A stretch of DNA of 64,000 nucleotides from Syncephalis fuscata S228 (GCA_025786725.1 JAHLTZ010000009.1:372001-436000); one strand, 5' to 3'. Positions 17,468 through 50,112 are shown, counted from the stretch's first letter. The notes: generated by a model not told the origin, from the letters alone. Made by a program: numbers and translations.

Positions 17468-18507
17468 CTAATGCGTTAATGTGTAGCTGTTTCTGCATGC
17501 AAATGAGATATGTCGCGTAGTCATGCTTTCTTTGAAATCAAATTGAGTAATTTGGAACTTGGTAGGCCTAGGCTTTGATTCAGTTATTGAGTTGGATCTT
17601 TTACAGGCACGGGCACATTGATTGCTCAAAACAATTGAAGTCATTAGCCTAATAATAACAATTAGTAAAAGTAGTAAAAACAAAACGATTGCACCTACCA
17701 ATCAGCGAGGAAAAACAGTATAGATGAATCGCCGCCGACTTTTAAAAGAATGCATGTGCCACAAATGATATTGCACAAGACCACAAGGCACATCACTTGT
17801 ATTCCTTCACGCGCCAATCGCCGCCACGCATCAGAGCCATATATTTTATATTGTTTATAGGTGACGTAGCTAAAGATGCCAGAAAAGAACGAGTTGATAG
17901 GAACAGTTAAACTGAACCAATACCATGGTATATAGGCAGGATAAGTAATAACACAGCCACTGTAAGCTTCTAGTGTGATTTGCGAGTGTTGAATTGCGAG
18001 GATTATAAAGCCAAATTGCGGCAAAATTAAACTGATTCCAATGACTGGTACCCAGTACTGGCGTCGCAGTGCTAGATATGCTTTTTGAAGAACAATTGCA
18101 CTATTGAATATCGTTGCAATAGTGAGGGCACAAATGACAAACCATAACATTTTTCGGCAACTAACATAGCCAACCGCAAAGCTGAAGCTAGACACCATGC
18201 CATGCGCCATTCCCAGTGCGGCAGGTACCAGGCAGCACCAGTTCTGAAAGCTATTGGGTCGGGCATAGAGTAGTTTGATAACAAGAAATACGTTGCTTGC
18301 AAAGATAAGTGAAGCCATAAAGTTGGCGGCAAGTTGGTATTGAATACCCGTAAGACGAGCCTGTAAAAGCTCTCTGTTGTTGCTTGGTGTGTTAATTACA
18401 AAGTCAATGATATTTATTTCACCAGACGGATCTAATTGCACGCCTAGAGACTGGATAGTCGATTCTATCCAGTCTGTAGCTAATGCACCAGTTTGTTCTT
18501 GAGCCAT
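17468..18507 (-). CDS. 7TM GPCR-like family member 1
   Basis: Family motifs WCCL, CR, LQKAY, GC, YGSDAWRRLAREGIQ, DW; intron 17649-17698. Confidence 0.85.
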
Positions 18508-19520
18508 ATATGGTGAATATCGAGTAAAAAAATACAGTGGTGATTGATAGAAATGCAAGAAAATCTGACAGCACCTTGATGTCTGTACAAAAATGATTAT
18601 TTGGAAAGTCGTCGATAGGAAACCTGTTAGTATATCACATGGACGTATAGTGATAGCGCGCCAATATGCATATTGGAAAATGGTTGATCATTGGCGACAC
18701 AAGGCGAAATTTTGGACTGAAATAGTTGTATACGTGTACAAGCCTTCGCTGTTTTATTTAGCAGTTTAAGTGCTGTGAATAAAATATGCATACTCAGCAG
18801 TATGTGTCTGCATAGCAGATTTAATGGTTTATTTCAAATGAAAAATGAAAGCACGCTGAACTGCCAAGTCTTTAGTAATGTTGGCCATATTAGCCATGCT
18901 GTTTAGTATTTGAACAATATGCTAGTGCTACACGTGTCAATAAAACGTCACACGAAATCATCATGCTAGATGTATGATCGGTCAAGGAATAAACAAGAAT
19001 TTTGGAGAGCACAATTGGTCATAAAAAGCGTACAGAAATACCATTAAAGCACTAGTTTTTTTCCATCTTCCAAAATGGCATTTCTAACCAAAAGTATCAG
19101 TACTATATTAGATTGAAATACCGTAATGATATAATGAGATGGTTGATTAACAGTAATTCATCACTTATTACAGCCGTTACTTTACAGCGTTATTAATTTA
19201 TACAGCTAATATTTTTTAAGTTTGTGTATATTAAAACATTCAGTTAATAATAAAGACAGCTTTTAATATTTACATGCTATTCAGTTAAATACGCGATAGT
19301 TTATAACAGAGAAAGTGACACTGACTCAATGTTTTGCTAATATGTGAGGCTGACACCGTTCCGCAAATAACCGGTTATTGCATGCAACTCCATGCTGTTC
19401 ACCTTTGGTCTTGCGTTGATGCTCACACATCATTCTAACCTGCCTATTTTGACCAGCCTCTTTATTATATATATATAAACTCTATAATCTTTGTATAGTC
19501 ATACCACCTAATACCATAGT

Positions 19521-20546
19521 ATGCCGCTGAAAGATAATTTGCAAGACAATGCCACAACTTGGTTCGGTATTCCATTAAATCCACTTGGCGGGATACCTGT
19601 ATATGATTTTGTCGCTGGGAAAGACGAAGACTACGAGCTGCCTAGATCAATGGTCCAGGCCCGACTAACAGGGCTTCAGCGTCAAATTGCCTGTTACATG
19701 ATTATGTCACTTATCTTTGTGCGTAATACGGTTGTAGCCATTAATGTACTTAAATGTCAGCCCAAAAGCTTTTCGGGATGGTGCTGCCTTATGGCGTCAT
19801 TATTTGGCATTTGTATGGGCATGATGGATTTAGTGGCTGTAATAATGACCAGCTTAAATTGCAGACAAATAGTTTGGTTTATTATTTTAGTTTATAATTG
19901 CTCGATTATGTTCAACACTATTATTTTGTTGCACAAAGCTTATCTGGCGCTACTCCGCCGCCGTTGGGTACTGTTTGTTGGCGCATTCTTCATAATATTA
20001 CAACTTTTATTCGCTTTTATTTCAGTGCAAAAGTCTCCGATAACTATAGAGGCATATAACGGCTGTGTAATAAACTACACAGTGCCTACGATAACCACAT
20101 GGATTGTTTCAGTATTGCCTGTTAATATGCTTTTATCAGGAATATTCAGTTACATTGCTTATAGGCAATACAGGCTATTTGGCTCAACAGCATGGAAGAA
20201 GCTAGCTGAGGATGGCATTCAAACCATGTGCGTAGTGATACTCTGTAACATACTATGTGGCATTGTCATTGTGTTTAAGCTATTTGGCAACTTTTCAGAG
20301 CTTTTCTTCATGATTGACTGGTAAGATAACTACATGTTGCAAAATCGTAACTAATCTGTTTTCAGGGTGGTCACATCAACAATATTGGCCAATCACTGCG
20401 ATTTTGTATGTAGAACAGTAAAGTCGCTTTCTACGGCATCTGGCGAATCTAAAAGCGTTGCTACTACGAATATGGATATAAAAGAGAACACGACAATATA
20501 TCCTAGTCATGCTTTTGACACTACCAACTACACATTGTCTTATTAG
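19521..20546 (+). CDS. 7TM GPCR-like family member 2
   Basis: Same motifs; single intron in the DW Trp codon; ends TNYTLSY*. Confidence 0.85.
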
Positions 20547-20858
20547 CAACAGCTTTTGTTTAATAAAGGCCTGAATGTTTGTGTGCACGGTTGTCACAGC
20601 CAATCAATTGAGTTGAGCTGCAATGTTCAACGCTTTGCTATCCGTGCCTCCTACTCTGCTTTTGCAAAGAATTAAATAGCGGTTTATAGCAACATGCATG
20701 CAACAGGTTTTTCCTGCATGTTTTTTGCCTTGTAAGGACTAGAAGGGTTGTTAAACCATATTGCTGTTTCATTTCGCTTACCACACTTGTTGCCACATAT
20801 ATACATACACAAATATATGTTTTATAACATTTAATCTAGTACTTTCTAACACGTCAAT

Positions 20859-21884
20859 ATGCTAGCCGATAAAACTTGGATGGAAAATACTACTAGTTTG
20901 TTGGGTATTCCATTGCATCCACTTGGTGAAATTTGTATATACGACTTTGCCAGTGGACAACAAGAGAACTACGAGCTATCCAGAGCAGAGGTCCAAGCTC
21001 GAGTAACAGGTCTTCATCGCCAAATTGTATCCTACTTGATTGTGTCGTTTATGTTTGTACCCAATATAACGAAAGCTATCAAAGTGCTCATGTGCCAACC
21101 GAAAAACCTTTCAGGATGGTGCTGTTTTATAACATCATTAATGGGTGCCAGTATTGGTGTAGTAACTGCATTAACTATGCTATTAAATCACATAAACTGC
21201 AGACATGCATGCTGGTGTCTTATCTTGTCTATTTGCATAGCTATGATGTTCAATAGTATTATTCTATTGCATAAGGCATATTTAGCATTGCTCCAACAGT
21301 ACTGGGTGCTGTTTATTGGTTCATTTTGCACGCTCTTGCAACTGTTGTTTATGCTTGCCGCTTTAAGGTTTATCCCAATTACAATAGAAGCGTATGGTGG
21401 TTGTATTGCCAACTATAGTCCAATTCTTGTATACACTTGGATTGCCGCTGCACTTCCTGTTAACGCATTTTTTTCATTTATATTCTGCTACGTGGCTTAC
21501 AATCAGTACAAGTCTTACGGCTCTAGTTCGTGGAAAAAGTTAACAGAAGAAGGAATTCAAGCCATTTGCTTGGTGACGCTATGCAATATAGTTTGTGGCA
21601 TTTTTATTGCATTTGAACTATTTGGAAAATTTTCAGAAATGTTTTTTGTTATTGACTGGTAAGTCAGTGGATATTGCTAAATTACAAGCTAACTATTAGC
21701 CAGGCTATTTACATCAACAGTGCTAGCCAACGACTGCGAAAGTAGATACAAAACAGCAAAAAAGCTTAAAGAAGCAAGTGATCGGTGTAAGGAGTGCAAT
21801 AATACGCAGATGGATATCAAAGAAACCATAACAACTTACCATGACCGTTTCCGTGGCACTACCAATTTTACATCATTTTATTAA
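20859..21884 (+). CDS. 7TM GPCR-like family member 3
   Basis: Same motifs and intron; ends TNFTSFY*. Confidence 0.85.
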
Positions 21885-22208
21885 TACTAAACATTCTTTA
21901 AACCAATTTAAATGCTAATCAACTTCAATAATCATAATAAACCATTTGAATTATTATGCAGTAATACCACAATTATAATGTCTGCATCAATAGCGTGTAT
22001 AGTACCACAAAATGATTGTAAACACTATCATGCGACAATACCAATAACCGGTTATAGCGTAAACCAAGATTTCGGCTTGTTTTGTCTTTGAGAATGTTAG
22101 TTGACCGGTTGGCCTCTAACATGTGTTTTCGCTATTTCTACTACTTGCTTTGTTGCGCTATAGACGATATTTCTATTAGTTATTTGCTTGTATTAGTACA
22201 ATAGCCAA

Positions 22209-23228
22209 ATGAATGAGCTGTCGAATGAGAATGTAACCAATTGGCTTGGTACTACGCGCGTTCCACTTGGTGAGATATCTATCTATGACTTTGTCAGTGG
22301 AAAGTATGAAGAACATGAGCTATCCAGGGCAGAGGTTCAAATTCGATTTACGGCTATACAGCGCCAAATTGCAGTGTACATAAGTTTATCAGCTATATTT
22401 ATGCACAATTTTTATGTAATAGTTAACATATTGCGATCCCAGCCTAAAAACATATCGGTATGGTGCTGTCTTTTTGTTGCTTTACTAGGCTCCGGTTATG
22501 TTATACCAATCTCGATGCTCGCGCTAGTAAATAGCATGAGCTGTCGACAAATATGCTGGTATGGCATAATAACTGTTTGCTTGTCCGCAATTTTCAATGG
22601 CATTATTTTACTACACAAGGCATATCTGGCGTCACTCCGACGACTTTGGGTGGCAGTTATTGGCATGATATTTGTGCTGTTGCAAGTAGGATTTATGGTT
22701 GTTGCGATTGTAATCACACCGGTTACTATAGATCCGCAGTATGCTTGCGCTGTCGAGTATAGCTCACTGATGATGTACGCCTGGATTGGAACAGTGCTAC
22801 CTGTTAATGTATTTTTTTCGGCCATTTTCAGCTACGTTACCTATACTCAATACAAAACGTTTGGTTCGGATGCATGGAGACGATTAGCCGAAGATGGCAT
22901 TCAAACCATGTGTTTGGTGCTGCTATGCAATGTCATATGCGGATGTTTTATTGCTTTCAGAGCCTTTGGAAGTGGCTCAGATATATTTTTTATTATCGAC
23001 TGGTAAGTCAGTAGTCATTGTTAAGCTGCAAACTAACTATTAAACAGGGTATTTACATCGACCATCTTGGTCAACCATTGCTCTAGCATATCTAAAGCAG
23101 TAAAGGCGTTTACTGAAGCAAGGAGCCGATCTAGAGAATACAGTAGTACGCAGCGCGATATAAATGAAACCATAACAACCTATCACGGTCACATTCCAGG
23201 TGTTACCAACTTTACATCATTTTACTAA
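22209..23228 (+). CDS. 7TM GPCR-like family member 4
   Basis: Same motifs and intron; ends TNFTSFY*. Confidence 0.85.
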
Positions 23229-23799
23229 TTATTGATCAATACAAAATAGCATAAGCAAGGATGTTTTTATAAACTAATAAAATGTTTAAATTACATTGCA
23301 CTTTATGACATACTATTGTAAACACGTGGTTTATCGTCATTATAAGTATGGATGTGCATGTAGTGTTTATTTAATGGGTCCTTCGCCTTTACTCGTCACG
23401 AGAAAACAACATCGTTTATTCAATATGGCTGTGTGTGTGGTACATGTGTGTATCCGATGCATTATACTATCGTCACAAACTGCTAACAAGTCAGCAGAAT
23501 ATTATAGCTAATTACCATCTATAGCTAAGCTTGCTCACTTGCCAGCAATTCCCTGTTTGTTCTGCGGCAGAAACGTAATACGCTTTAGTGTTGCCAGTAT
23601 GGCCGTTATCTAAAATTTCGTGCATCCTGAAATACCAGTATGGAATCACGCGACTAACCAGCCATGCAGCATCCACCTTTCTACCTTTTTGGCAACCTTG
23701 AACTTTTAGCTCATAATTTTACTTTGATATTTGTGTTTAATTGCTTATTGATTGTTTATTATATGGATATATCCACCAGCCACCTTATTAATATAACAA

Positions 23800-24817
23800 A
23801 TGCAAGAACTGGGAACAAATGCAACCACTTGGCTTGGTATCCGATTGGATCCACTTGGCGAGCTGTATATCTATGACTTTGTCAGTGGAAAGTTGGAAAA
23901 CTATGAGCTATCTAGAGAAACCGTTCAAGCTCGACTACTGGGTGTGCAGCAGCAAATTGCATACCATTTAATTGTATCTATTTTTTTTACACGCAATCTG
24001 TTTGTAGCGATCAAAGCGCTTCGATTTAGATTAAGCAATCTATCAGGATGGTGCTGTCTAACGGTATCTTCACTAGGCTTCGGGTTTCTCGTCTACACTG
24101 TATTGCTAGGAACGGTCTATGAAATGGCATGTAGGCCGTTAAGCTGGTACATTCTTTGTGCCATGAATCTTTCTAACGTTTTCAACACCATAATTTTATT
24201 GCACAAGGCATATCTGGCTCTGCTTCGTCCGTACTGGGTACTCATCAGTGGTTTTCTTTTTATAGCATTACAGCTCGGCTATCTGATTAGCACTATAATC
24301 ATCAGCCCATTCACTATAAAGGAATATATCGGTTGCGTATTTAATTATACAAAGGCCCAATCATATGTCTGGCTTGCAACAGTATTTCCTGTCAATACTT
24401 TCTTTTCGGCTATATTCAGCTACGTTGCTTATAAACAATACAGGAATTTTGGCTCAGATGCATGGAAACGACTGGCTAAAGATGGGATTCAGACAATGTG
24501 CTTGGTTATACTATGTAATCTAGTATGTGGCACGCTGATTATTTCTGAAGTTCTGAAGAAGTTTGCGGAAAATCTTTTTGTTTTTGATTGGTAAGTTGAA
24601 TGTTTGTCATCGTAATACAAGCTAATGTTCGTAAAGGGTTTTTACATCCACAATCTTGGTCAATCATTGTGAAAATGTGTCCAGGACAATCGAGTCATTC
24701 ACTGCAACAAATAATAGGTCCAAAGAACTCAATACAACGCAAATGGACATGAAAGAAACCATAACAACTTATCATGGCCGTATTCGTGGTGCTACGCATT
24801 TTACATCATTTTATTAA
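23800..24817 (+). CDS. 7TM GPCR-like family member 5
   Basis: Same motifs and intron; ends THFTSFY*. Confidence 0.85.
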
Positions 24818-25162
24818 TAACGACTTTCGTTTAATAAAAATTTAAGCAAATATGTTTTTACAGCATTAATAAACCATTTGATTAACTTGCTGTATTACTA
24901 TTATAAAGCTAGGCTAATTATTGCGTAGATCAGTTTGCTAAAAATTATCTGCATGCTCATGCTTGCAGTGCATATTAACAACCAGTTTTACTAGATATAT
25001 CTCTTCGCCTTGAATCATTACTAATCGTGCTACTGCCATTTTATCCATTTTTATCCACATTCGTACTTCCATGTTTACATTAATATCAATTAATTTATTA
25101 TATATATATATATAAATAGTATTTTTTCATTAGCTAATAATTTACCAATAGTACATCAAACA

Positions 25163-26178
25163 ATGTCCGATATAAAAGGAAACATGACCGTTTGGCTCGG
25201 TATTCCGCTAAATCCACTTGGCGAGATGCATATATACGACTTCATTAGCGGAAATCAAGAAGACCATGAGTTATCCAGAATGGAGGCTCAAGCTCGACTA
25301 ACAAGTATGCAGCGTCAGATTGCGGCATATATTATTATCTCATTGATATTTATGCGCAATTTTTCCGTAGCTATCAATACGCTTAAGTTTCAGCCTAAGA
25401 GTCTTTCAGTGTGGTGCAGTATATTTGTATCCTTACTAGGCGTTGGACTTTTTATATGTTCCTCATTATCGGGACTAGTAATTAACATAAACTGCAGACA
25501 GGCAAGTTGGTACGCCATGTCAGCTCTTTGCTTGTCAACAATTGCCAATGGCATTATTTTGTTGCACAAAGCATATCTAGCATTGCTTCGAAAGCGTTGG
25601 GTGGCAATTACTGGCATGATATTTGTGTTATTGCAAATAGGATTCATGGTTGTTGCTTTCAAGGCTGCGCCAGTTACCATAGAAGCCGAATTGGCTGTGT
25701 TGTCGAATATGGCAATTTATTGTCATATGCCTGGATCGGAACAGTGCTACCTGTCAACATATTTTTTTCAGCTGTATTTAGCCATGTTGCCTATAAACAA
25801 TACAAAACGTTTGGTTCGGATGCATGGAGACGATTAACTGAAGATGGCATTCAAACTATGTGTTTGGTAGTATTATGCAATGTCATATGCGGATGTTTTA
25901 TTGCTTTTAAACTTATTGGCAAAAACTCGGAAATATTTTTTATAATCGACTGGTAAGTTAATATTAACCGTTAAACTACAAACTAACTATTATACAGGGT
26001 GTTTACATCGACAATTTTAGTCAATCATTGCTTTGTTATATCTAAAACAGCAAAAGCATTCACTGAAGCAAAGAGCCAGTCTAAAGGAGGCAACAGTACG
26101 CGGCGCGATATAAATGAAACCATAACAACTTATCATGGTCACATTCCCGGTACTACAAACTTTACGTCATTTTATTAA
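25163..26178 (+). CDS. 7TM GPCR-like family member 6 (1-bp deletion at ~25689; assembly error or young pseudogene)
   Basis: GCCGAATTGG versus GCCGACATTGG in the otherwise identical tract of member 7; ORFs 25163-25837 and 25507-25956 join if one C is restored. Confidence 0.75.
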
Positions 26179-26489
26179 TCATGGGTTTACGTAAAAATAA
26201 CATAAACAAATGTGTTTTCATAAAACAAATATAATGTTTTGCCTATCTTACTATACACCATTGTAGATTAATGCATTGAAGGTCATTTGCATGCGTATGC
26301 TTGCAGTCCATGTCAATAACCAGTTTTACTGAGTATACATTTTCGCCTTGAATCATCGTTGATCTTACTACTGCCATATTATTGTTTTATCTGCCGTTTG
26401 CATATTCATATTTACATTTATATCTATTAGCTTGTTATATGTATATATAGAGCTTTTATTAGTTAATTACACAAATAATATAGCAAACA

Positions 26490-27508
26490 ATGTTCAATGC
26501 AGAAAAGAACACAACCACCTGGCTCGGTATTCCGCTAGATCCACTTGGTGAAATACCAATATATGATTTTATTAGCGGAAACAAGAAGGCCATGAAATAT
26601 CCAGAAGAGACACTCAATTTCGATTAGTAGGCTTTCATAGTCAAGTTGTAGCATATATTGTCATATCAACACTATTTATGCGCAATCTTTCTGTAGCTAT
26701 CAATACGCTTAAGTCTCAGCCTAAAAATTTATCAATATGGTGTAGTACACTTGTATCATTGCTAGGCATTGGACTTTTTATAATTACCGTATTACTGGGA
26801 TTTATAATTACCATAAACTGTAGGCATATGTGCTGGTTTGCCATTACAATTCTTTGTTTGTCAACAATTGCCAATGGCATTATTTTGTTGCACAAAGCAT
26901 ATCTAGCATTGCTTCGAAAGCGTTGGGTGGCAATTACTGGCATGATATTTGTGTTATTGCAAATAGGATTCATGGTTGTTGCTTTCAAGGCTGCGCCAGT
27001 TACCATAGAAGCCGACATTGGCTGTGTTGTCGAATATGGCAATTTATTGTCATATGCCTGGATCGGAACAGTGCTACCTGTCAACATATTTTTTTCAGCT
27101 GTATTTAGCCATGTTGCCTATAAACAATACAAAACGTTTGGTTCGGATGCCTGGAAAAAACTGGCCGAAGGTGGCATCCAGGCTATGTGTTTGGTGGTAT
27201 TATGCAATGTCATATGTGGAACTTTTATTTTTTTTAAATTTCCTAGTAAACGATCGGAAATGTTTTTTATTATTGACTGGTAAGTCGGTATTTATTATCA
27301 AGCTATAAACTAACCAGCAACTAGGGCGTTTACATCAACAATTCTGGTCAACCATTGTGCCGACATATCTAAAGTAGCCAAAGCACTCACTGAAGCAAAA
27401 AGTCGGCCTGAAAAGCATAATGGTACTCGGGTGGACATAAGAACATCTATGACAACATACCGCGACTATATTCATGGCGACACCACCAACTTTACATCTT
27501 TGTTTTAA
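26490..27508 (+). CDS. 7TM GPCR-like family member 7 (1-bp deletion in A-run at ~26580)
   Basis: MFNAEKNTTTWLGIPLDPLGEIPIYDFISG joins ORF 26678-27283 if one A is added; ends TNFTSLF*. Confidence 0.75.
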
Positions 27509-27803
27509 TAAAAACTGGTCAATAACAATTAAATCTAATATGGCATATTTTAATCGAATCAATAAACCATTTGAATTATTGTTTGCACCAATGATATGTC
27601 GCGATAACACTGCACAAGACCCCAAAAAGCAATGATTTGATCATGCGTATAACCGGTTTATCACGCGTGGTCTCTTTGTCTTGCTTTGCCTTTGGCTACT
27701 ACCTAATCAGCTTCGCAATTAACTACCTAGCCTTTGTTAGACATGCCTAGGCTGCGTATATTATTAATTCACAATAGTATTTTTTGCACTTTTTAACTAA
27801 ACA

Positions 27804-28830
27804 ATGGATGTTAAATGGGTAGCATTTGCTACTAGATTAATAAATACTTCTTTATATACCTTGGCAAAGTATACATATATAGTGTTGTTGGTGGACAAAA
27901 GAGGTGCAATAACTATCTAGAGAAGCTCCTCAAGCCTGATTAACGGACTTTCAGCGTCGAATTGCATGCCATGTATTATTATTGTTGATTTTACCCGTAA
28001 TTTATCTGTAGCTATTAAAACTCTTAGATCACAGTTTAAACGTTTATCGAAATGGTGCTGTTTATTTACAGCGGTGCTAGGTGTTGCAATTGCTGTAAAT
28101 ATTGTATTGGTAGCATTTGTTAGAAAGGTTAATTGCAGACAAGCAGCCGGGATCGACCTTATAAAACCTTGTCTATCCATTATTGTTAATAGTTTTACAT
28201 TGTTGCATAAAGTATATCTAACGCTAATTCGACGATACTGGGCAATGATCTGTGGAATTTTATTTACAATATTGGAAGTTGCGGCTATGTTAAACTCTTT
28301 ATGGATAGTGAAAATTGCTACAGAAGCGTACAGTGGTTGCGTTGTTTGTTACAGTCCTTTATCATATACACATGGATTGCTGCTATTGCACCAATTATTG
28401 CATTTTTCAGCGATATTTACGTATATGTCCTACCAATAATATAAGATATTTGGCTCAAGAACATGAAAAAATCTAGTTGAAAATGGAATGCAAGTCATGT
28501 GCATAGTAATACGATGCAGCACAGTATGTGGCGTTGCTATTGTATCCAAGCTATTTGGCAACTTTTCGCAGTTTTTCGCAGTTTTTCTTCATGGCTGACT
28601 GGCAAGATAACTACATGTTGCAAAATTAAAACTAATTTAATTTTTAGGGTGGTTACATCAACCGTACTGATCAACCATTGTGCTACAGAATCTAAAACCG
28701 CACGGCTGTTCATCAACCCAAGTGAATTTACTAGTGAGTTTAACAGTGTATACAGATAAATGTAAAAGAAACAATAGCAGCTTATCGTGAGCACATTCTT
28801 AATATTACTAATTTTACAATATGCCGCTAA
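27804..28830 (+). pseudogene. 7TM GPCR-like family member 8, decayed
   Basis: Recognisable WCCL/NCR/LHKVY/GC motifs, but several frameshifts, TAA at 28437, TGA in place of the conserved Trp, a short tandem duplication at ~28563-28584 and a GC in place of the GT donor. Confidence 0.85.
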
Positions 28831-29104
28831 ATGATAATATCTATTTTATAGTTTAATAAATTAGTAATGTCAGATGATATACCAAAAATAGCTCCTAGCA
28901 GTATTTTGCCTGTCCTAAATTGCCATGCGTTTTTTCAGCGATAAAGAAGCGCAACCGGACCAACAACCGGTTTTATTCCATGTGCAGTTCTCGGTCTCGC
29001 CTCGCTTTCCATCCTTTTATTCAACTCCATACTATATTCTTACCTTCAGTATTATTCGCAGTTAGACGTGTAAATTTTTTTACCTTTATTAAACAACAAA
29101 CACC

Positions 29105-30163
29105 ATGGTATATGATTCGGCTAAATTCGATGATGATTCATGGAAGGTCAATGCTACTAAATGGCATGGTGTTCCGTTATATCCGGCCGGCGAAATACCA
29201 TTAGTCGATTTTTTTAATGGAAAACAAGAAAACTATTCGTTATCCCACAGCGCCATTCAAGCGCGGATGGCAGTCGTATATCCACAGATGACGCTTGCTT
29301 TGTCTGTATCTCTTATTTTTATGCGCAACTTAAGACGCTCTGTAAAGTTGCTAATAGCACAACCACATAATCTATCGGGATGGTGCTGCCTCGTTCCATC
29401 CATTTGTGGCGCAAGTCTTTTTATCTGCATCTCTATGCTAATGCTGTCCAATGAAATGAACTGCAGGAAAGCTGTTTGGTATATTGCGTTTATGATCAGC
29501 ATTTCGCTTGTATTCAACACTGCAGTTGTGCTCCAGCGCGCTTACCTAGCATTATGCCAAAAATTTTGGATAGCAGTAGTTGGTGTGCTATTTTCATTGC
29601 CCCAACTAGCCTTTATATATATTGTAGTGTGGTATTCTCCGGTCTCTATAGAGCCAAACGATGGCTGTGTCATCCATTATCCCGATTTTCTGGCATGGTT
29701 CTGGGCCGGCGCATCCATCCCCATCAATGCTTTTTTAACAGCAGTATTCAGTTACATCACATATAATCAATACAATCTCTACGGCTCTGATGCCTGGAAA
29801 CGACTGGCACGCGATGGCATTCAGGCCATGGTTTTAGTTATATCTTGCAACGTGGTTTGTACGCTGATTCTTTTATCCAAAGTAGCCGGATCTTTTACGG
29901 AAATGTTTTTTGTAATTGATTGGTACGTATAGTTTTTTTATAGCACAAATATAATAACTAACATACTGTTCAGGCTGATTACGTCTATCGTTCTAGTCAA
30001 TCATAGTAGCAGTATACGTAAAGCGGCCAAGTCAGTTGCAGCACCTAGAAGTCAAAAAGATAAACCAGCAAGCGCCGACATTGATTTGGGAGCGACAATA
30101 ACCACCGCCTATAGACCTTTTACCACCGTTAACAGTGCTAGCAAATATTCACGTCTTCATTAA
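29105..30163 (+). CDS. 7TM GPCR-like family member 9
   Basis: Same motifs (LQRAY, YGSDAWKRLARDGIQ) and intron; divergent C-tail ending YSRLH*. Confidence 0.85.
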
Positions 30164-30283
30164 CATTTTTCTAATACCAATACAATTAATAACATCTTGC
30201 GCAAATAAATAAATAAAAATACATTCTATTTTTATACAATAGTTCTATTTTATTTTTCTACAGCTCTATTTGTCACCGTCGCT

Positions 30284-32578
<2,295 letters not shown>

Positions 32579-33249
32579 TCGATTGTGAATAAATTTATAT
32601 TCTTAATTAGTTAAAATCATTGTTGCCATTAAAGTGGCTATTTTTTTACTTATGATACTGCATTTACACACTAAATATTTTTAAATTCGATAAAATATAT
32701 AGCATTAAACGTAATATAATGTTTATTTAGTTTAGTTGTTGTGACCAAAAACAGTCAAGCAAAGATGTTGTTGACAAAGCAGAGAAAGGTACACAGTGAG
32801 ATCAGAGTGATGTTGTAGGCGCCGCTACTTTTTACTAACCTATGCGATACAAAGAGGTAATAATGCATCGTAAAAGTATTTCATTTAGTAGTATGTAATT
32901 AGCTCCGTTAATTAAGAAAGAAAAAGAGATTGTTTAGAGCGAAAGCCGCGGAGGACTACAGGTGATCTTGTATGTACTATCAATTCGTTAATTTTTTAAG
33001 TGTTGCTGAATTCAATAATTTCAAAACATTATCCAAAATGAGCAGCTTATAAAAGTGTGCTTATATAGTTTATTATGATCTCTGCAAGAGGTAGTGGTGA
33101 TACTACAGGTATTTTATCATTGCCGACAGGATATCGCGATATTCTGTTCTTTTCATCCATACAAAAATTTCTATACTTAATTGGCTTGTTGTCTAATCTT
33201 GACTTCAAGTTGTAGTATGGTGCGTCAGGCGGTGTTTTATTTGTATATG

Positions 33250-34244: not shown

Positions 34245-34254
34245 ATCGGATGAC
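34245..34254 (-). promoter_or_regulatory. Possible sterol regulatory element (GTCATCCGAT) with adjacent CCAAT box upstream of MVD1
   Basis: Fits an RTCANNCGAY SRE-like pattern; inverted CCAAT at 34228-34232; upstream of a mevalonate pathway gene. Confidence 0.3.
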
Positions 34255-34389
34255 GCGCGCTTTAAAACAATGGCCAAGCAGCACACAAATACGCCATTAA
34301 ACCATTATCACGACCTTTGTCTTTCACTTTTACTATTGTTACTAAATCATAGCTTATTATTAAAGGCCGTATAAATAACCGAATCTATT

Positions 34390-35610: not shown

Positions 35611-35722
35611 TAACTAATAACTAATAAAAGTATATGTCTATTTGATTCTTGGTTGCTTTTCTTATTGTCTTACCACTACTGATATTTCATACCATAATCA
35701 ACAAATTCAACGCAGTTTGTAG

Positions 35723-36520: not shown

Positions 36521-36630
36521 GACATTAAATAATTAGCAAACAATATAAAAAAGCAATAGCTATTGTTAATTTTTTAGTTCTACACGTCACTTCAATACTA
36601 CATTATAACAGTATCATTGTAGCCATACAG

Positions 36631-37609: not shown

Positions 37610-37809
37610 GAAAGAATACGAAAAAGCAAAGCTGAATACCACTGAAACTCATCGTTGACGCCTATCTTTGTTTGCTAAACATGACTGAAACCTTAATGTC
37701 TGACTTTATTTGGTAAAAAATAGTCATTCCATTTAGTATGCATTTACGCATATACATACTGGAATAGTATAATCTATTTAAAGATGCTCACAAGCTAGCA
37801 TCAATGCAT

Positions 37810-38917
37810 TTACGGGCTGGTCTTATCCATATGGACCACCACCGTGTCGGAACGTGTCTCTGCTTCAATCTCTTCGGCCGTCTCTTCCTCTACTGTCTTT
37901 CGTGCTCCTTTGGTTTTTTGTTTACTTGCTTCAGTGTCATGATCGTCGTCATCGTCTTCTTCATCGGCAATGTCAAATATTGGTTCACCAACAGGTAAAT
38001 TGCCGCCTAATCCCGTTTCTCGTTGACGACCACCACCACCACCTACTTGACCTAGTTGAATGTGATCACCACGACCACTGGCACCGCCACCTACTACACG
38101 GAAGCCATGACCTTCTTCATCTTCGTCATCATCAAGAGCAAAGGCATCTTCAGCGTCCTGTTCGTTGCTAGGCAGCTCTTGTAATCCGTATCGTTGATTC
38201 TCCGAGGTTGGTCGCCAGAAGAAGGCAATGAGCGTGAATACAACAAAGTACTCGGTATTCAGCCACCCATCCAGTATAAACCATTGGTAGTGCCAACGAC
38301 GAGCCACCCAGTCTGGATCATTTTGATGCGTTACTGATGCCGTGTTGACTACAAAGAATAGACCCAGTAGAATAACTGAAAAAATTAATATACGCCACAA
38401 ACGAGTGTACATTGCCAGTTTAACATGCTGTTTACGCGTTTCTAATAGCTGGGTGGTGGCGGTAAGCCCATTGAGAATGTACTGTACAGAGTTAAGAATT
38501 TTTTTAAATAATATACGCTAGTTTCATCATCTCTTAAAAAGGATATCCAAAAGTAGAATATGGTCATAGTAATTGATAGTGGTAGAACAAATACAATAAC
38601 CAATAGACCGGCTGTCTCCGGGGTAGTTAGCATAGTACCAGATGCATATAATGCGCCGCATACGAAATGAACATAGGTTAGTAGTTTACACCGGAACATA
38701 GCACCGCCCAATGAAGGCCTGTAATATCAATTGTAGACGATAATAGTTGGTTTAACCATAAATATATCAGTTAAATAAACAAATAATACTAAATACTTAC
38801 CGAACTACACCATAACCAAGAGAAACGATCAATAGTAGGAAGAATGACAGACTGTTACGCCAGCATTAAGTATAGCCAGTATAATCATTAGAGCAAGCGC
38901 TAATAGCCATATCGATC

Positions 38918-38957
<40 letters not shown>

Positions 38958-40049
38958 GCAGTAATTGATCAATGGTAACTTACAAGGCTCGCCTCGACTA
39001 TTATAATCCTCCCAAAATCCGTAATGCATTGCCATTTCTACTGTCAAGAAAAACATAACACCACCAATATAGTTCTATAATAAAGTGTGATTAAACAATA
39101 ATTATATTATATTGATTATTGATAACGCCATTTACCTGTACCGGTAAAATATCTGACCAGTTATAATATGATTTTGTTGCCCAAGCAATAAACATAATAA
39201 GATATGTAAGGGAAAATACACCGTAAAACTAGATATTATACATATTAACATTACAATATTAATAGACTATGTATGCTGGTCACTTACAATCAACTTTGGG
39301 TACTCGGATGGAGGTGCTTTACCAAATGGACTCTCCCAAAATACATGAGCATCAAAGTTTTCGAGTGAGACGGTATTAACACAATACCATCCAGTACGTG
39401 TGATATTGTACCGAATGTCATATGGCTCAGACTGGTTTGTACGAACATGTACAGATTCCGTATATATCATAGGCATTTCTCCGGCGATAGGTGTACTGAG
39501 AAATTGGCCACGTTGTGTCTCGTTACAAATCTTGAAATCAATTGCTTCATCGTCGCAAATATACGTTTTGGGGCGCTATGGATGGCCAGTCATTATGTCG
39601 TCAACATACAATTATTAAATGCTTACTTTGGTGTCATTTTTTGGAAAAACGCCCAAGGCTGCCTCATCTCTCCAATCGTAGATAACGATCGAAATATCGG
39701 CGTTGTTGGCTGGCTTTTCCGGAAATTGGACTAATGACGTTGATTAATAGATGAACAGATTAATCAACTCTGACCAGCTAGCACTACCATTAATACTTAC
39801 CATGAACATAGGAGTCACGCGATCCAGCAACGTCACCCTTTGCGTACATGCCTTGACAGAGCATAGTGGTGCCGGTACTGCCGCCCTAAATAACGATCAC
39901 AAAGCTAGTTAGCTGGCCGATTAAGCGCGTAGTTGTCCAGCTCATCCTACCAGATGCTGATGGAACGCCATAACATTGCTGTTGGCCAGTGTCAATAGGC
40001 CCAGCCAGCAGCCGAATGACCACGTCTTTTGTCGCCAACTTGGCCACAT
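37810..40049 (-). CDS. PTM1: Ptm1/TMEM87 (Lung_7-TM_R, GOST family) membrane protein
   Basis: Signal peptide, TGWYCV, LNAGRNSLSFFLLLIVSLGYGVVRP, KQHVKLAMYTRLW, FWRPTSENQRY; many introns including U12-type 38479-38546. Confidence 0.9.
38479..38546 (-). other. U12-type (minor spliceosome) AT-AC intron
   Basis: 5' site ATATCCTTT, branch TTCTTAAC (38498-38491), 3' TAC; removal gives in-frame FYFW|ILNGLTATTQLLETRKQHVKLAMY. Confidence 0.9.
38921..38958. repeat. (AAT)n microsatellite in a PTM1 intron
   Basis: Directly visible. Confidence 0.9.
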
Positions 40050-40922
40050 TGCTGTTTATAAACTATATTGCTTGCTGAATGCCAAGAACAATAGAGAGGA
40101 AAATGCTTTGATAATAAAACTTCTTTTCCAGCTAGTAGCGCTACTACTATATATACGTCTTAGTTAGACTGGCTTGACAAAAAAGTAAAAAGTTAATGAA
40201 CACGTAGGTGCATTGAAGGAAAGCAGCAACCAGTGGCGATAGTTGTATGTTCAAAGTAACGAGGCGACGGGAGAACTTACGTTGGTCACGATGATTGGAT
40301 GGCAGATCTATATTATGTTACATTGTGATATAGCCGTTGCCGGAGACAAACCCAATGCGACCATTGCATAGTTAATTCTACGTTCTTTTATTTTATTTAT
40401 GATTTACATTGAAGATTTAAATGTAAATTATGATTCTAAAAGTATTTATTTATTTATTATGTTCTATATACTTATTAATATAAGATAAAAAACCATTGAC
40501 CAAATGATATGCTATCTATGAATAGTGAGTATTGTTGTACTGCTCGTCCCCCTTTTAAACACAGGCCAATATATGGCACAGTCATTGTAAAGTTTGATAG
40601 GAAATAACAATGTTTTGTTTTTATGCACAATCTAGTATAATAAAAATACATCAATCTAATGCCAACAAATAAAGTAATAAGATTTGTTTTATATTACTCA
40701 ATAATGGATGTTTATTGAGTGATGTGGCACATATTGAAAGAGAAATTAGAAGGAATAAAGTTTGGTCCAAAATACAAGAATCAGCGGCATCACTACTGAG
40801 CAATAATGGTGGGGATGGTAGTAACGAGTAGATGAAGAGGAGGAAAAAGGACGTGCGTGCTGCTCGACGCCATGGTCGGTCGTCGTGTTACTACTCAATT
40901 GAGTGCTACGCACGTCTCTTTC

Positions 40923-41785
40923 CTAGCAGTCAGGCGTGAATTTGATCCAGTCAAAGTAGGCATACTGAGGAAAGTTGGCTGAACTACTCTTGCCGGCCCA
41001 GTCGCTATAGTCGCTGCCGTCCCAGAGTGTGACTTTGAAGCGCATCGGCTGGTTAGGAAATAGTTCGGCCTCCGATTTCCTTAGTGTGCGAATCACTTGA
41101 CCATCAAATAGCCATCTGAAAAGGGGTAGACATTCGTCGAAAGTTAAATAGTGTCTCTATAGCTAAATAGATTACTTACGAGACTTCATCCTTTTGATAG
41201 TCAATACCATAGACGTGATACTGTTGTGATGTGTCGCTTCCCGTATCGTGGTATACCGGCACTACTTGACCGCGCTGTCCATTGACCCAGTAGAACGACT
41301 GGAACCGGTCTGGATCTTTGCCGACAAATTCAATATCAACCTCGTCTTGGCTACCATCAGGGCCTACGCCACTGCGAAGCTATTCAAAGTAAGTAACACT
41401 GATTTGCAAGCAGCCAAGTAAATCGATGGCTTACATAAAGCGACGTTACAATACCGCTAGTTCGGCCAGTCTTTATTCTTGCCTCAACCTTGCCGGTCCT
41501 GTACTCGAACGTCGGTCCGATGGACGGGCCACATGTCGATGTCACTTTAAGAACTAGATTGCCATTGTCAAGGAATGCATTTTCCTGACAGAAGTTGTTG
41601 TCGAATGATTCTTTGGTAAGCTCGGCGAGGTCTTTTTCTTGGTCAAAATTATACGTAATGGGATTGCAATCCGACTGGGATAACACCGGCTTTCCGAGTG
41701 GTGCCGGCGACAGATTCAATGCCGCATTGGCCAGCATGATTGCTGGCAATAACACCATCATAATGATGGGCACCATGCATAACAT
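40923..41785 (-). CDS. Secreted GH16 glycoside hydrolase/transglycosylase (Crh1/Utr2-like catalytic domain)
   Basis: Signal peptide; GKVEARIKT, GIVTSL, catalytic QDEVDIEFVGKD (ExDxE), YFDWIKF; two introns; no Ser/Thr stalk or GPI tail. Confidence 0.88.
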
Positions 41786-43176: not shown

Positions 43177-44198
43177 ATGATTAATAATTGGAGACAGAAT
43201 GCCACGACAATTATGGGCATTAAGCTGCATCCGCTCGGTGAAGTGCCAATATTCAGTTATATATCTGGGATGACGGAGGATTACATGCCAGAACAAAGTG
43301 TGATCCGTGGTCGACTGTTTGGCTTTTATCTTCAAATCGTTTCCAATGTAATATTAAGCGTGATTTTTACTCGCAATCTACATCTTGCTATCAAAACAAT
43401 TGCAACTCGATCGCGTAACTTTGCCCTATGGTGCTGCGTTATATCATCTGCTTTGGGCATAGTGCCAGGCGTGATGATTATGAAGGCCTCTTTAGGTGAT
43501 GGCGTGAATTGCAGAACAGTGGGATGGTATGATATATACACCATATGTATTTCGACCATTTTTTGCCATTTAATTGTGCTGCAGCGTGCCTATTTTGCAT
43601 TACGCCAGCAGTATTGGATTCTAGTTATTGGAATTGCGATATTATTGCCACAAATTGGCTTTGGTGTTGTTGGAGTAGGCTATTCTTACATAATAATAAG
43701 CGAGGATAGTGGCTGCACCATTCACTATCCCAATTCGCTGCCGTGGCTCTGGTTTGGTGGGTCCATACCAATCAATTTGTTTTTTTCAGGAATTTTCAGC
43801 CATGTCGCATATAAGCAATATCGCACCTTTGGTTCGGATGCATGGCGACGACTAGCACGCGACGGCATCCAGGCCATGTGCTCGGTCACACTCTGCAATA
43901 TAGTGTGTGGGCTAGGCATTTTCTTCAAGATTGGAGGCGATTTTTCGCAAACATTTTTTGTAGTTGACTGGTAAGCAGGCTAGCAGTGCTAACTATTACA
44001 GCTAATTCATTATTTAGGGTGATTGCGTCGACAATTCTCGTGAATCATTGCAGCAGCATACGCCAATCTAACACCAGTGCTATTGCCTCAAAAAGCAAGT
44101 CCAAACGCTTGCAAACCTCCCGTATTGATATAAGAGAAACTATAACAACCTATCAAGGGCGGTATATAGCCAATACAGAATTTACGTCAATTTACTAA
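43177..44198 (+). CDS. 7TM GPCR-like family member 10
   Basis: Same motifs and intron; ends TEFTSIY*. Confidence 0.85.
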
Positions 44199-44749
44199 GT
44201 ACTAATTTTTGTGTACACATTTGGAAACGGAAATAAAACAATTTCATCTTCTGCAACGTTTTTTTAGAGTCCTACGCAACGTGACAGTACATTTGAAGTT
44301 CGATACTGCTTATATTAAGTAATCGTTGTTGACAATTTTATTCTAAATAGGAATAAAGATACCAAATTTAGTGTTTTTATTTGCAAGTAGTTGCAAACAT
44401 TGGCAAATTAGTATTAGCTGATTCTGGTATTTTAGTTTAGATTTTTGCCTACCATTTACGGTAATGCGTGAAAAAGTGCATATAAACAATGTCTCACCGG
44501 CCTTGTCACAAATCATGATTTAAGAAAGGATTTGCGCGCGCTGTACAGTGTAACTGTAGCGTGCATTGACTTATTGTAATGCGATTAACCGGTTATATTG
44601 CATGACATGCGTTTCATGCGTCCAATCCAACATGAGAATTTACGAAATATATTCTTCTAAGCTACCAAAGTTCTTCGCCGCACGCAAAAAAAAATCTTTC
44701 TCAACTAATTTATGACTTTGTTTAAAATCAACTAAACACAATAGTAAAT

Positions 44750-45757
44750 ATGAACGATGAGTGGAAAAAGAATGCTACTACTTGGATCGGTATTCCATTG
44801 CATCCGTCAGGCGAAATAAGTCTGTTTGACTATGTCAACGGCAAGCAAGATAATTATGAGCTATCTAAAGCTACGATTCGAGCTCGCCTAATGGGAATTC
44901 AGTTTCAGTTCATGTTCAGCATCATATCGGGACCTTTATTCATCTACAACTTAATAAGCGTTATTAAAACAAGAAAAACACGGCCCTATAGCGTATCCAG
45001 CTACTGTTGCCTCATCTCGTCACTCTTAGGTATAACCTATAGTATAGTAAGCGTGATTGGAGTGGTGGCCGACAAACTAAACTGTAGGCAAATGGTTTGG
45101 TATCTTGCGTTTGTTGTAAGCTTTTCTATGTTTTTCAACAGCATCACCATACTTCACAGGACGCATCGGGCACTGCTTTGCCAAAAATGGGTGGCAGTTT
45201 GGGGCACCATTTTTACACTACCGCAATTTGGATTTCTAGTCATTATATGTCTGTTCTCTTATATTACGATAGAGCAATACATGGGCTGTACCGTTCATTA
45301 CCCTTTTTTTCTTTCCTGGTATTGGCTTGGAACCATGCTTCCCATTAACATGTTTTTCTCTGCTATATTCAGTGCAGTGGCCTATAGGCAGTACAAGACC
45401 TACGGTTCCGACGCTTGGAAACGCTTGGCCCGCAATGGCATCCAGACTATGTGCCTAGTAGTATTGTGCAATTTAATATGTGGTTTCATCGTTATTTTTG
45501 AACTAGGAAGATATGTTTCACAAATGTTTTTTATTGCCAATTGGTAAGCGGTCCATTTAAATTTGAAATAGCTCTGACTTTTCTTTAGGTGTCTCACTAC
45601 AACTATACTTGTAAATGATCTTACAAAAAAGTATGCAAATAATGGCTCGACTACAGAAGAGAAAAACGCACCGAATGTATATAGCGTTGATGTTGATATT
45701 AATGAAATTACGGCAGGCTATTCCAGTCGATTTGTAGCCATTACCAATTACATCTAA
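44750..45757 (+). CDS. 7TM GPCR-like family member 11
   Basis: Same motifs (YCCL, LHRTH, ANW variants) and intron. Confidence 0.85.
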
Positions 45758-46096
45758 TGCTAAGATGGTAACACGAATACTAATAAACTATTACACATGC
45801 GTGCAATATTATAATTTCTAGTAACCAGTGTATTAATACTTAGTTTTAAATAGCACATCTGGATCGGGAGTCATGATTCAGCAGTTCTATTATTAATATC
45901 AAAAGACTCAGCCAGACCGTTAACGCTGATAAAACCGGTTATGTCTTATCACATGCTGCTACACGACAGTTCGCCTTGGGCCCTTTGGTTTCCAATTCTT
46001 ATACTTAATTATTTTGTTGATAGCTTTTTCATATACAATACTTATACGCATTACTTCGTGTTTTATATACTATTTGACAAAGCATAACGATAAAAA

Positions 46097-47117
46097 ATGA
46101 ACAACAACATAAGAAACAGCTCTATAGTCAATCTTGGAAATGCGCTACATATGCTTAAAGATGTATACATATACGACTTTATTAGCGGAAAGCAAGAGAA
46201 TTATGAGCTATCTAGAAAAGAAGCGCAAGATCGACTAATGGGACTACAAAAGCAAATGGCAATTCACTTTATCTTATCTATTTTATTCATCCGTAATTCA
46301 TTTGTAATTACTAAAACACTTCGAATTCATCCTAACAATATTTCAGGATGGTGTTGTTTAGTAGTATCGCTTTTAGGAATTGCATTCAACTTATATACCG
46401 TATGCATAGTATTAGTTGATAATATGAGTTGTAGACCATTAATTTGGTATATTACATGTGCCATTAATATTTCCAATATTTCCAATACAATTATTCTATT
46501 GCACAAGGCATATCTGGCCCTACTTCGTCAGTATTGGGTGATCATCATTGGTTTACTATTTATAGCACTACAATTCGCCTTTATGCTTAATGCTGTACTA
46601 ACTACAAAAGTTACTATGGAAATATATTACGGTTGTGTTTTTAACTATACGAAAGGTCTATCTTACATCTATCTCGCGTCAATAGTGCCTGTCAACGCAG
46701 TTTTCTCAGCTATATTCAGCTATGTCGTCTATAAGCAATACAAGAAGTTCGGCTCGGATGCATGGAAACGATTAGCCAAGGATGGGATTCAAACAATGTG
46801 CTTAGTAGTGCTATGTAATATAGCATGTTGCGCACTGATTGTTTCTAAGGTTCTAAACCACGATTCTGAGCTTTTCTTTGTTGTTGATTGGTAGGTTGGA
46901 TAGTTGTCATAATGATCCCAACTAATGTTTTTAAAGGGTTTTTACATCCACGATTTTGGTTAATCATTATGCAAAAACAACCAAGGCAGTTGATTCAATG
47001 GTCAACACGAGTAATAGGCCCAGAGATCCTAATAGTATGCAGATGGATATAAAAGCGACCATAACAACTTATCAAGGCCGTATGCATGGCACTACCAATT
47101 TTACATCACTGTTTTAA
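46097..47117 (+). CDS. 7TM GPCR-like family member 12
   Basis: Same motifs and intron; ends TNFTSLF*. Confidence 0.85.
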
Positions 47118-47743
47118 TAACATGCAATAATAATTTAAGCAAATGTTTATTTTCATAACATCAATAAACCATTTCAATTGATTTGTTAAGTTACTATTAT
47201 AAATTCAGCCTAGTTATTATGTGGATGCTCTGTTAAAACTATCTACATGTTCATTCTTGTAGCCAATACCAATAACCAGTTTTACTAAATATATATTTTT
47301 GTCTTGAATCATTACTAATTATGCCTCTGTCATTTTATCTGTTTTATCCACATTCGTACTTCCATGTTCATATTAATTGAGTCGATTTTACTTAGTAAAG
47401 TATTGCCAGATAGCCTTGTCAATGAAAGTTAAGAAAACATTACATATAAGCGTAATGTTATAATTTTTAGTAAATATTATATTAAGACTTGATTTTTAAA
47501 TAAAACATTTGAATTGATGACTATGACTCAGTTGTCTTTTTGTTAACATCAATGCTTTGATCAAATTGTCAACGCCAAAAACCGGTTATATTCCATCACA
47601 TGCTAAATGGCAGCAATTCGCCTTGGGCCTTTTGTTTCCACTTCTCATGTTTAATTACTGTGCTGATATTTCTTGTATATACAATAGTTCTACATATCTA
47701 GGTTGCATTTTTATATACTATTTGACAAAGCATAACGATAAAA

Positions 47744-48764
47744 ATGGACAATAACGCAGGGAATAACTCTATAGTCAATCTTGGCATGCTGCTAGATATG
47801 CGCAAAGATGTATATGTATACGACTTTATTAGCGGAAAGCAAGAGAACTATGAACTATCTAAAAAAGAGGTGCAAGCTCGATTAACGGGAATGCAAAGAC
47901 AGATTGGGTCTCACATTGTCCTATCTAGCCTATTTATACGTAATCTATATATGATTATTAAAACACTCCGAATCCATCCCAACAGTCTTTCAGGATGGTG
48001 CTGTTTGTTGGTATCACTGCTGGGGATTGTACTCAACCTGTATACCGTATGCTTGGGATTAGCTGATGATATTAGCTGCAGGCCATTAGTTTTGTATATT
48101 ACCTGCGCCATTAGTCTTTCCAACATTTTCAACACCATAATCTTATTGCACAAAGCATATTTGGCTCTACTTCGTCCGTATTGGATAGCCATCAGTGGTT
48201 TACTATTTATAGCACTACAGTTTGCCGCTATGATTGATGTTGTACTAACTACAAAAGTTACTATGGAGGAGTATTATGGCTGCGTCTTCAATTATGATAA
48301 CCTTGTGCCTTACATCTATCTCGCGTCAATAGTGCCTGTCAACGCATTTTTCTCAGCTATATTCAGCTATGTCGTCTATAAGCAATACAAGACGTTTGGC
48401 TCAGATGCGTGGAAACGATTAGCCAAGGATGGAATTCAGGCAATGTGCTTAGTAGTACTATGCAATATAGTATGTACCGTGTTGATTATTTTTAGAGTTC
48501 TAAAAACATTTTCAGATCTTTTCTTTATTATTGATTGGTAGGTTGAGTAGTTGTCATAATGATACAAACTAATGTTTGTACAGGGTTTTTACATCCACGA
48601 TTTTGGTTAATCATTGTGCAAAAATGACCAAAACAGTTGATTTAATGGTCAACACGAGCAATAAATCCAGAGATCCTAATAGTATGCAGATGGATATAAA
48701 AGCGACCATAACAACTTATCAAGGCCGCATCCGCGGCACTACTAATCTTACATCACTGTTTTGA
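47744..48764 (+). CDS. 7TM GPCR-like family member 13
   Basis: Close paralog of member 12; ends TNLTSLF*. Confidence 0.85.
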
Positions 48765-49094
48765 TGATCAGTGTTCTTTAAAAAGTATCGCTAACTATTT
48801 TAGTACACTGTACGTTACATTAATAAACTAATTTAATTGGTTTGTTTTGATATCGCTATTACAAATTATATCACTATAGCTTAAAAAACGGATTTATAAG
48901 CTATTTATCGATAGCAGCGCTTGATCACATATTAACCGGTTTTAATGGATATAAGTAGCCTGCCTTTGCCCGCCTTGGAGACTGCAGCGTCTAACGCTTA
49001 ATTTAGTATCTATATTCTCAGTATTTTGACGTTACTTTTTATACGTGTATACTTATTTAATACTCATTATCTTAACCTTTTTACTATTCTAAAA

Positions 49095-50112
49095 ATGAGT
49101 AGCTTAACGGCAAATACAACCACTTGGCCCGGTATCCGACTGGATCCATTTGGCGAAATGTATATCTATGACTTTGTCAGTGGAAAGCCAGAAAACTATA
49201 AGCTATCTAGAGAAACCGTCCAAGCTCGACTGACGGGTATACAACTGCAAGTTGCATGTCATGCCGCTATATCTGTTTTGTTTATTCGCAATTTATTTGT
49301 GGTAATCAAAACGCTTAGAGTTCGATTCAATGACCTGCCAGGATGGTGTTGTTTACTTGTAACATTATCAGGAATCGTATTGCTCGTGTTCAATATTCTT
49401 CTAGCTACAGTTTATTCAGTAAGCTGCAGACCACTGGTCTGGTCTATAATCTGCGCTATTGGTTTTTCAAATGTTCTCAATACGATAATTCTATTGCATA
49501 AGGCATATCTGGCCATGCTTCGTCCGTATTGGGTGATCGTCAGCGGTGTTATTTTCATAATGTTACAGTTCGGTTTTGTAATTATTGCTATAGGTTTTAG
49601 TCCAATGACTATAAAAGAATATGGTGGTTGTGTATTTAACTATACAGATGCTCAATCATATTCCTGGCTTGCAACGGTATTGCCTGTTAATGCATTTTTT
49701 TCGGCTATATTCAGCTATGTTGTTTACAAGCAATACAAGACTTTCGGCTTAGATGCGTGGAGGCGCCTAGCTGGGGATGGGATCCAAACAATGTGTCTAG
49801 TGATATTATGTAATATAGTGTGTGGTGTGTTGCTTATATGTCGAGCTTTTGGAGAATTTTCAGATCTTTTCTTTATCATTGACTGGTAAGTTAAATGTTT
49901 GTCGTAATAATATAAACTAATATTTATACAGGATTACTACATCCACGATCTTGACCAATCATTGTGAAAATATGTCAAAAGCAATTGGCTCGCTTGTCAA
50001 AACAAACGATATGTCCAGAAATTGCAACACAACACGAGCGGATATGAAGGAAACTATAACAACTTATCATGGTCATATTCGTGGTGCTAACAATCTGACA
50101 TCATTGTTTTAA
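49095..50112 (+). CDS. 7TM GPCR-like family member 14
   Basis: Close to member 5; ends NNLTSLF*. Confidence 0.85.

Follow-up and report, generated by a model that had tools for sequence, protein, structure and literature searches.

The 64,000-nucleotide (nt) stretch of the Syncephalis fuscata S228 genome analysed here (C361:372001-436000 of a 29.4 Mb assembly; hereafter the window, its positions counted from the first letter) carries a tandem array of paralogous genes whose predicted products resemble G-protein-coupled receptors (GPCRs). By tblastn and gene models exactly 14 paralogs lie within 17468-50112, and the initial annotation of the window, which had described 14 paralogs of about 320 amino acids (aa) in two sub-clusters, was correct on both points. 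Nine form the first sub-cluster (17468-30163), g01 on the minus strand and g02-g09 on the plus strand, and five, all on the plus strand, the second (43177-50112). Each of the 14 has a first exon of ~790-820 nt, an intron of 45-51 nt inside a Trp codon that follows 'D/N' in the seventh transmembrane helix (TM7), and a second exon of ~180 nt; the products are of 320-335 aa and exon-1 identity among them is 38-77 %. In the first sub-cluster, intact models were obtained for g01 (17468..18507; exon 1 18507-17699, exon 2 17648-17468; a seven-transmembrane (7TM) product of 329 aa), g02 (19521..20546; 326 aa; NCBI model P0004), g03 (20859..21884; 326 aa; NCBI model P0008), g04 (22209..23228; 324 aa), g05 (23800..24817; 323 aa; protein P0001, used for structure modelling) and g09 (29105..30163; 335 aa), and in the second for g10 (43177..44198; 324 aa), g11 (44750..45757; 320 aa), g12 (46097..47117; 324 aa), g13 (47744..48764; 324 aa) and g14 (49095..50112; 323 aa). 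The N-terminal sequon previously reported for most paralogs is present in all of the 11 frame-intact models except g01, and by sequence reading also in g06 and g07.

As read from the assembly, three array copies are broken (g06, g07 and g08). In contigs from a single public run the introns predicted for g05 (24591-24636) and g06 are spliced out at their GT-AG ends, and the run is therefore RNA. At the g06 break an RNA contig of depth 30 has one base more than the assembly, and a single contig of depth 5 has one more at the g07 break, a weaker case; because these contigs carry a base absent from the assembly, g06 (25163..26178, short of one base after 25689), which is spliced and expressed, is intact, and g07 (26490..27508, short of one base after 26581) is probably so. 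Copy g08 (27807..28759) has a short exon 2, a frameshift near 27972-27990 and two stop codons (28437 and 28464); the assembly is matched at these lesions by contigs of low depth, and g08 is the sole clear pseudogene among the 14. Clear pseudogenes in the array thus come down to this degraded copy, the breaks in g06 and g07 having the appearance of assembly errors. Contigs were located on g05, g06, g08 and g09, at depths unfit for ranking expression among the copies.

The structure model of the g05 protein has seven helices in GPCR topology, an ordered N-terminal cap, a hairpin in the second extracellular loop (ECL2) and a TM7 that runs as one long continuous helix with no helix-8 kink. Positive-inside bias and the N-terminal sequons point computationally to an N-out, C-in orientation. 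In a Foldseek comparison (one of the checks proposed in the initial annotation, together with site-wise dN/dS and a genome-wide copy count) all top rows were rhodopsin-class (class A) GPCRs. VIA-align gave structural similarity to Ste2, with microbial rhodopsins second to fifth and TMEM87A a strong match, and the best rows of an Atlas shape search include a DUF6533 cluster (TM 0.63). These results agree with the earlier description of seven hydrophobic segments in a GPCR-like, N-out arrangement. The two cysteines singled out in that description, C111 (within CR, at the start of TM3) and C179 (within GC, in ECL2), are invariant in 65 genes, and are jointly present in 118 of 120 scorable homologs and jointly absent in two; in the model C111 stands at the start of TM3, C179 lies within the ECL2 hairpin and residue 110 takes part in a beta-bridge. 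A conserved cytoplasmic and a variable outer face, also claimed, are evident in the column entropies (1.57 bits for the inner face vs 2.55 bits for the outer, p=2e-11), and the motifs quoted in support are present. The residue 25 positions past the TM3 cysteine (3.50-like) is Lys in 80/127 members and Arg in 36/127, and the start of TM6 (D228-G229) has Asp, Glu or Asn in 112/127 and Gly in 113/127. TM3 ends in [QEH][KR]AY only, with no DRY; NPxxY and CWxP occur in 0/127 members and D2.50 is likewise absent. No Pfam GPCR family matched any of 127 members at E<0.01, and four Pfam scans and PDB sequence searches returned nothing for the family. As judged from the model, then, the family belongs to the GPCR-fold 7TM superfamily and lies outside the GPCR families catalogued in Pfam; the earlier view that these proteins are not of the Ste2/Ste3, Gpr1/Git3, cAMP-receptor-like or Pth11 classes is in keeping with the lack of any class-defining Pfam domain in the 127 members. 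That they act as G-protein-coupled receptors we consider probable.

The array genes also share an upstream site. The palindrome AACCGGTT, which is the Grainyhead consensus (PMC3348937), lies at 19369..19376, 152 nt upstream of g02, and further exact copies stand upstream of family genes at 22046, 27651, 28965, 44587, 45933, 47580 and 48934, with one-mismatch copies at 20702, 24980 and 26318 and upstream of g01. Nine exact copies in the window compare with 0.7 expected (310 genome-wide), and eight of them precede family genes by ~140-165 nt. With at most one mismatch and within 400 nt, the site is found in 40/66 family genes, mostly at -140 to -200, vs 4.7 in shuffles; S. plumigaleata contributes 4/5 genes to this count, and 0/39 non-family control genes have such a site. 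The paralogs share ancestry, yet the flanks of the site have diverged. The family thus shares an upstream Grainyhead/CP2-type site at a fixed position, and a single CP2 gene (PF04516) is present in the genome, whose product would be the factor that binds family promoters. Since Thamnocephalis has one-mismatch sites in only 2/7 genes, one of them at the right distance, and the one S. pseudoplumigaleata gene tested has no AACCGGTT-type site, the site is so far conserved only in S. fuscata and S. plumigaleata. The remaining exact copy in the window, at 42312, is 865 nt upstream of g10 and ~530 nt upstream of a divergent GH16 gene, and could serve either.

Beyond the window, the g05 query detected 145 loci in its own genome, a divergent-member query 44 further loci, and a motif-pattern search 133 matches (vs 0 for the control) with at least 20 further loci. 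Counted by hand, with redundant contigs and identical-score pairs discounted and from searches that score the best candidates only, the S. fuscata family comprises roughly 180-210 loci, a lower bound. A family profile gathered 307 clusters at 50 % identity in a large sequence library. Among the matches listed, which stop short of the weaker 157, all the named ones that were looked up belong to Thamnocephalis or to one of three Syncephalis species. The Atlas cluster that matches the family comes from Zoopagomycota; the lineage-specific repertoire proposed at the outset is in line with this, and restriction to Zoopagales is a plausible range among these matches, a wider one being possible. The supplement of a survey of 1,357 fungi gives S. 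fuscata six GPCRs (PMC12842992), a figure that therefore does not include this family, and the same survey's table (Liu et al.) has no Ste2- or Ste3-class receptor for this species. UniRef auto-names a few members as GPCR-like, and no paper on the family was found in the searched literature, outside which most subscription journals lie. Nine contigs (C188, C189, C191, C192, C10, C13, C98, C101 and C331) contain a repeated ~12 kb segment, as judged from their ends; in eight the contig end falls at an identical base within a truncated receptor copy, and the same segment starts C331, which reflects either a multi-copy element or assembly redundancy. A subtelomeric location of these eight truncated copies was rejected in view of the identical contig ends and the lack of telomere repeats, and they were discounted from the count.

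Several observations concern how the array arose. A quick tree unites g02-g07, g12-g14 and three S. plumigaleata genes in one clade (99) and makes g05 the sister of g14 across the sub-clusters, so that neither sub-cluster is monophyletic in this tree. Genes g01 and g09 have 1:1 orthologs in S. plumigaleata, that of g09 adjoining the Lys-tRNA synthetase gene, and the matching region of that species has seven copies, of which two are broken; its neighbouring genes are the same but differently ordered, and the rearrangement breaks fall at the receptor clusters. Both sub-clusters probably go back to a single array. Within 25532..27150 (plus strand) g06 and g07 share an identical tract of 290 nt (codons ~125-221, TM3 to TM5 or the third intracellular loop) with flanks that diverge by about 20-30 %, and gene conversion is its probable origin. 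Comparison of these sequences supports a lineage-restricted expansion with local birth-and-death. Codon models (our own implementation, with branch lengths scaled from the M0 fit and power limited by deep divergence) gave an omega of 0.25 overall for 60 genes, with 0.13-0.21 in inner segments and 0.28-0.52 at outer helix ends. M8 vs M8a was not significant for 21 genes, for 60 genes or for two other clades; the local 9-gene clade gave a weak 2dL of 3.4 (M8-M7 7.6), one of five tests and inflated by gene conversion, and no robust site class above omega 1 emerged across the tests. What these models show is functional constraint, relaxed in the pocket, rather than a demonstrated arms race. The family is real, expressed, constrained and very large. 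In S. plumigaleata the counterpart of g10 (L009:4397-9192) is split into two halves that lie ~4 kb apart on either side of a DUF8286-like gene, which suggests an insertion.

Comparison with known systems helps to place the family. Ustilago maydis Gpe1 (Pit1), a DUF6533 structural relative, was shown in a 2026 paper to be a peptide-activated GPCR that requires R133, the cysteine C178, whose partner is C108, and two adjacent TM6 residues that are DG in its relatives (PMC13652807). The S. fuscata proteins resemble it in the 7TM fold, in a short structured N-terminus and ECL2 that form a cap, in the TM3-ECL2 cysteine pair (68 residues apart, 70 in Gpe1), and in the basic 3.50-like residue 25 past the TM3 cysteine and the DG at the start of TM6, so that motif 3 of Gpe1 is present as matched by spacing. 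They differ in that Lys is commoner than Arg at the basic position and in having N66/hydrophobic and W84-C85-C86 in place of motif 1 (TM1 Glu, TM2 Lys-Tyr). PF20151 (DUF6533) matches no member, and the DUF6533 hidden Markov model (HMM) gave sub-threshold matches only on the genome, none at listed family loci; reported Gpe1 homologs are all basidiomycete, and no Pit2-like precursor was found adjoining the genes here. Because motif 1 and the Pfam domain are absent and the equivalences are by spacing, we do not file the family as a member, although by analogy it plausibly works like Gpe1. No member matches PF02116 or PF02076 (Ste2/Ste3, class D), and the similarity to Ste2 is structural only. Pth11-like receptors (class XIV), whose expansion is tied to host perception in parasitic fungi (PMC13308352), offer a parallel as a lineage-specific GPCR expansion in parasites; they are a separate family confined to Pezizomycotina (PMC12842992), with no CFEM or PF20684 match here, and the 105 GPCRs of F. 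graminearum in total are fewer than the loci of this single family. Class A likenesses are, by spacing, N1.50-, C3.25-, K/R3.50-, ECL2 Cys- and P5.50-like residues and clustered birth-and-death, against which stand the lack of a 7tm_1 match and of D2.50, CWxP and NPxxY, the lack of robust positive selection and the conserved TM7 intron. Atlas feature neighbours (0.80-0.93, scores under 0.9 being leads only) are DUF6534 (PF20152), DUF7703 (PF24802) and chytrid 'TOM1-like' 7TM clusters, the second match being a chytrid cluster auto-named THH1/TOM1/TOM3 (0.93); these are uncharacterised fungal 7TM expansions with no HMM match here, although DUF6534 proteins have been proposed as GPCRs in Agaricomycotina (PMC12842992).

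Two G-alpha genes, the only ones found, lie 15 kb apart on contig C306 (469482-470473 and 484604-485961). One product ends in CGLL, a Gi-like terminus. A Gpa2/GNA-3-like C-terminus was not found among the G-alphas (the counts being lower bounds), and a PDB search for their class gave no match at the strict cut-off set. A G-gamma gene is present, as are 27 matches to the regulator of G-protein signalling (RGS) domain, representing about 20 distinct loci. These are many RGS loci beside the two G-alpha genes detected, and some may be 7TM-RGS fusions.

We think it likely that in this array a very large family of surface receptors, with a GPCR fold and a range restricted to Zoopagales, has bloomed locally. 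Our working hypothesis is that each paralog would bind a different extracellular cue, by analogy with Ste2 and Gpe1 most likely a peptide, in a pocket enclosed by the outer ends of the helices, the N-terminal cap and an ECL2 tethered by a disulphide, and that binding would open a contact between TM3 (K/R136) and TM6 (D228-G229). One of the two G-alpha subunits, or both, would serve as the common partner of all paralogs, and this is proposed as the reason for the invariant cytoplasmic face; the Ser/Thr-rich tail may serve desensitization, and a single CP2/Grainyhead-type factor may co-regulate much of the repertoire. Syncephalis species are obligate mycoparasites (PMC6784888). If the proteins are receptors, their most likely use would be the sensing of host hyphae or the soil environment, a proposal that we hold to be about as likely as not. 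More tentatively, and with less than even odds, Syncephalis may have independently evolved a chemoreceptor repertoire of animal scale, with ~200 receptors of an undescribed GPCR class, two G-alphas and one Grainyhead-like factor, that sets host recognition, the class being perhaps a Zoopagomycota branch of an ancient Gpe1/DUF6533-type lineage.

The odorant-receptor comparison drawn initially retains clustered birth-and-death, and is weakened in that two of the three apparent pseudogenes are likely assembly errors and the diversifying pocket it implied finds no robust positive selection in site models; nor is the array a self-contained system, being about 7 % of the genome-wide family, and it has in Gpe1/DUF6533 a characterised fungal analogue that the initial annotation did not take into account. 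The receptors might instead detect the fungus's own signals (self peptides, secreted or host-processed, in mating, fusion or development), a reading we regard as fairly unlikely: the nearest characterised receptors, Ste2 and Gpe1 (PMC13652807), are activated by fungal peptides, the survey gives S. fuscata no Ste2/Ste3-class receptor, stable ligands are compatible with the absence of strong diversifying selection and the Grainyhead-type site suggests a developmental regulon, whereas ~200 loci are far above the need of a pheromone system and the array spacers yielded no convincing peptide-precursor open reading frame (exon-split precursors would escape). It is unlikely that the GPCR fold here operates without heterotrimeric G proteins, in trafficking or scaffolding of the GOST/TMEM87 or TOM1 kind or with another cytoplasmic partner. 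The strong TMEM87A match, the THH1/TOM1/TOM3 cluster, the unkinked TM7 of the model and the mere two G-alpha genes for ~200 receptors would suit it; however, family members have neither a GOLD domain nor a GOST_TM Pfam match, although the GOST gene of the window (37813-38517) matched PF06814 readily as a positive control, trafficking GOST proteins are low-copy, and a variable outer face over a conserved inner one fits receptors.

A largely neutral bloom, in which recombination has amplified many redundant or dying copies alongside a few functional receptors, would explain why 26/91 fetched S. fuscata family loci look broken in the assembly (an upper bound, given assembly errors) and why gene conversion and rearrangement breakpoints occur at the arrays. 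We hold it to be improbable in the face of an omega of 0.25 over 60 deeply diverged genes, a promoter site kept amid diverged flanks and orthologs retained between species, and some of the breaks are assembly errors. Last, microbial-rhodopsin-like pumps or photoreceptors, or transporters or enzymes, come to mind from the rhodopsins in the VIA-align ranking and a conserved TM7 Asp (D263), and are extremely improbable: retinal binding is ruled out by the lack of a Lys four past D263 (DxxxK in 1/85 scorable rows, Thr being commonest there), and there is no Bac_rhodopsin or transporter Pfam match. A receptor bloom of the kind proposed bears on how obligate mycoparasites find and recognize their hosts, and as the means by which they perceive hosts or surroundings it is a candidate open to testing. 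Classical fungal GPCRs are regarded as scarce in early-diverging fungi; one unannotated family of ~200 loci would raise the count for S. fuscata about thirty-fold, above the F. graminearum total. The short, nearly intronless genes, a Gi-like G-alpha and the Gpe1 yeast reporter offer a direct route to ligands. The family is new and of unusual scale; lineage-specific fungal GPCR blooms (Pth11, DUF6533/6534) are already known, and no new principle is involved.

Past the array, g15 (61672..63284, plus strand; hhalign 97.7 %) is a distant family member with a hydrophobic N-terminus, no TM3-ECL2 cysteine pair and a C-tail of ~220 aa; the protein folds as 7TM, and its homolog search gave a single metagenomic ortholog and no bridge to other phyla. 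Its intron interrupts the same Trp codon as in the array genes, in phase 1. Genes of the core clade have the TM7 intron in phase 2; divergent members and several from Thamnocephalis have it in phase 1, possibly through one-base intron sliding, and a few family members lack it. In exon 2 of g02-g07, g10 and g12-g14 the disordered tail closes with a conserved DIKETITTY...TNFTSF/L-Y/F, possibly a trafficking or partner-binding signal. A PTM1/GOST (PF06814) 7TM gene (~37810-40050, minus strand), unrelated in sequence to the receptors, lies between the sub-clusters, and the other neighbours are ordinary: Tom22 (3015-3677), a CCDC97-like gene (4201-4971), the ribonucleotide reductase (RNR) small chain (8145-9392), Lys-tRNA synthetase (30284-32580), mevalonate diphosphate decarboxylase (34390-35610), GH16 (40904-41785), ribosomal S17 (51520-52114), prenylcysteine lyase (52587-54317) and a YVC1-like channel (56648-58731).

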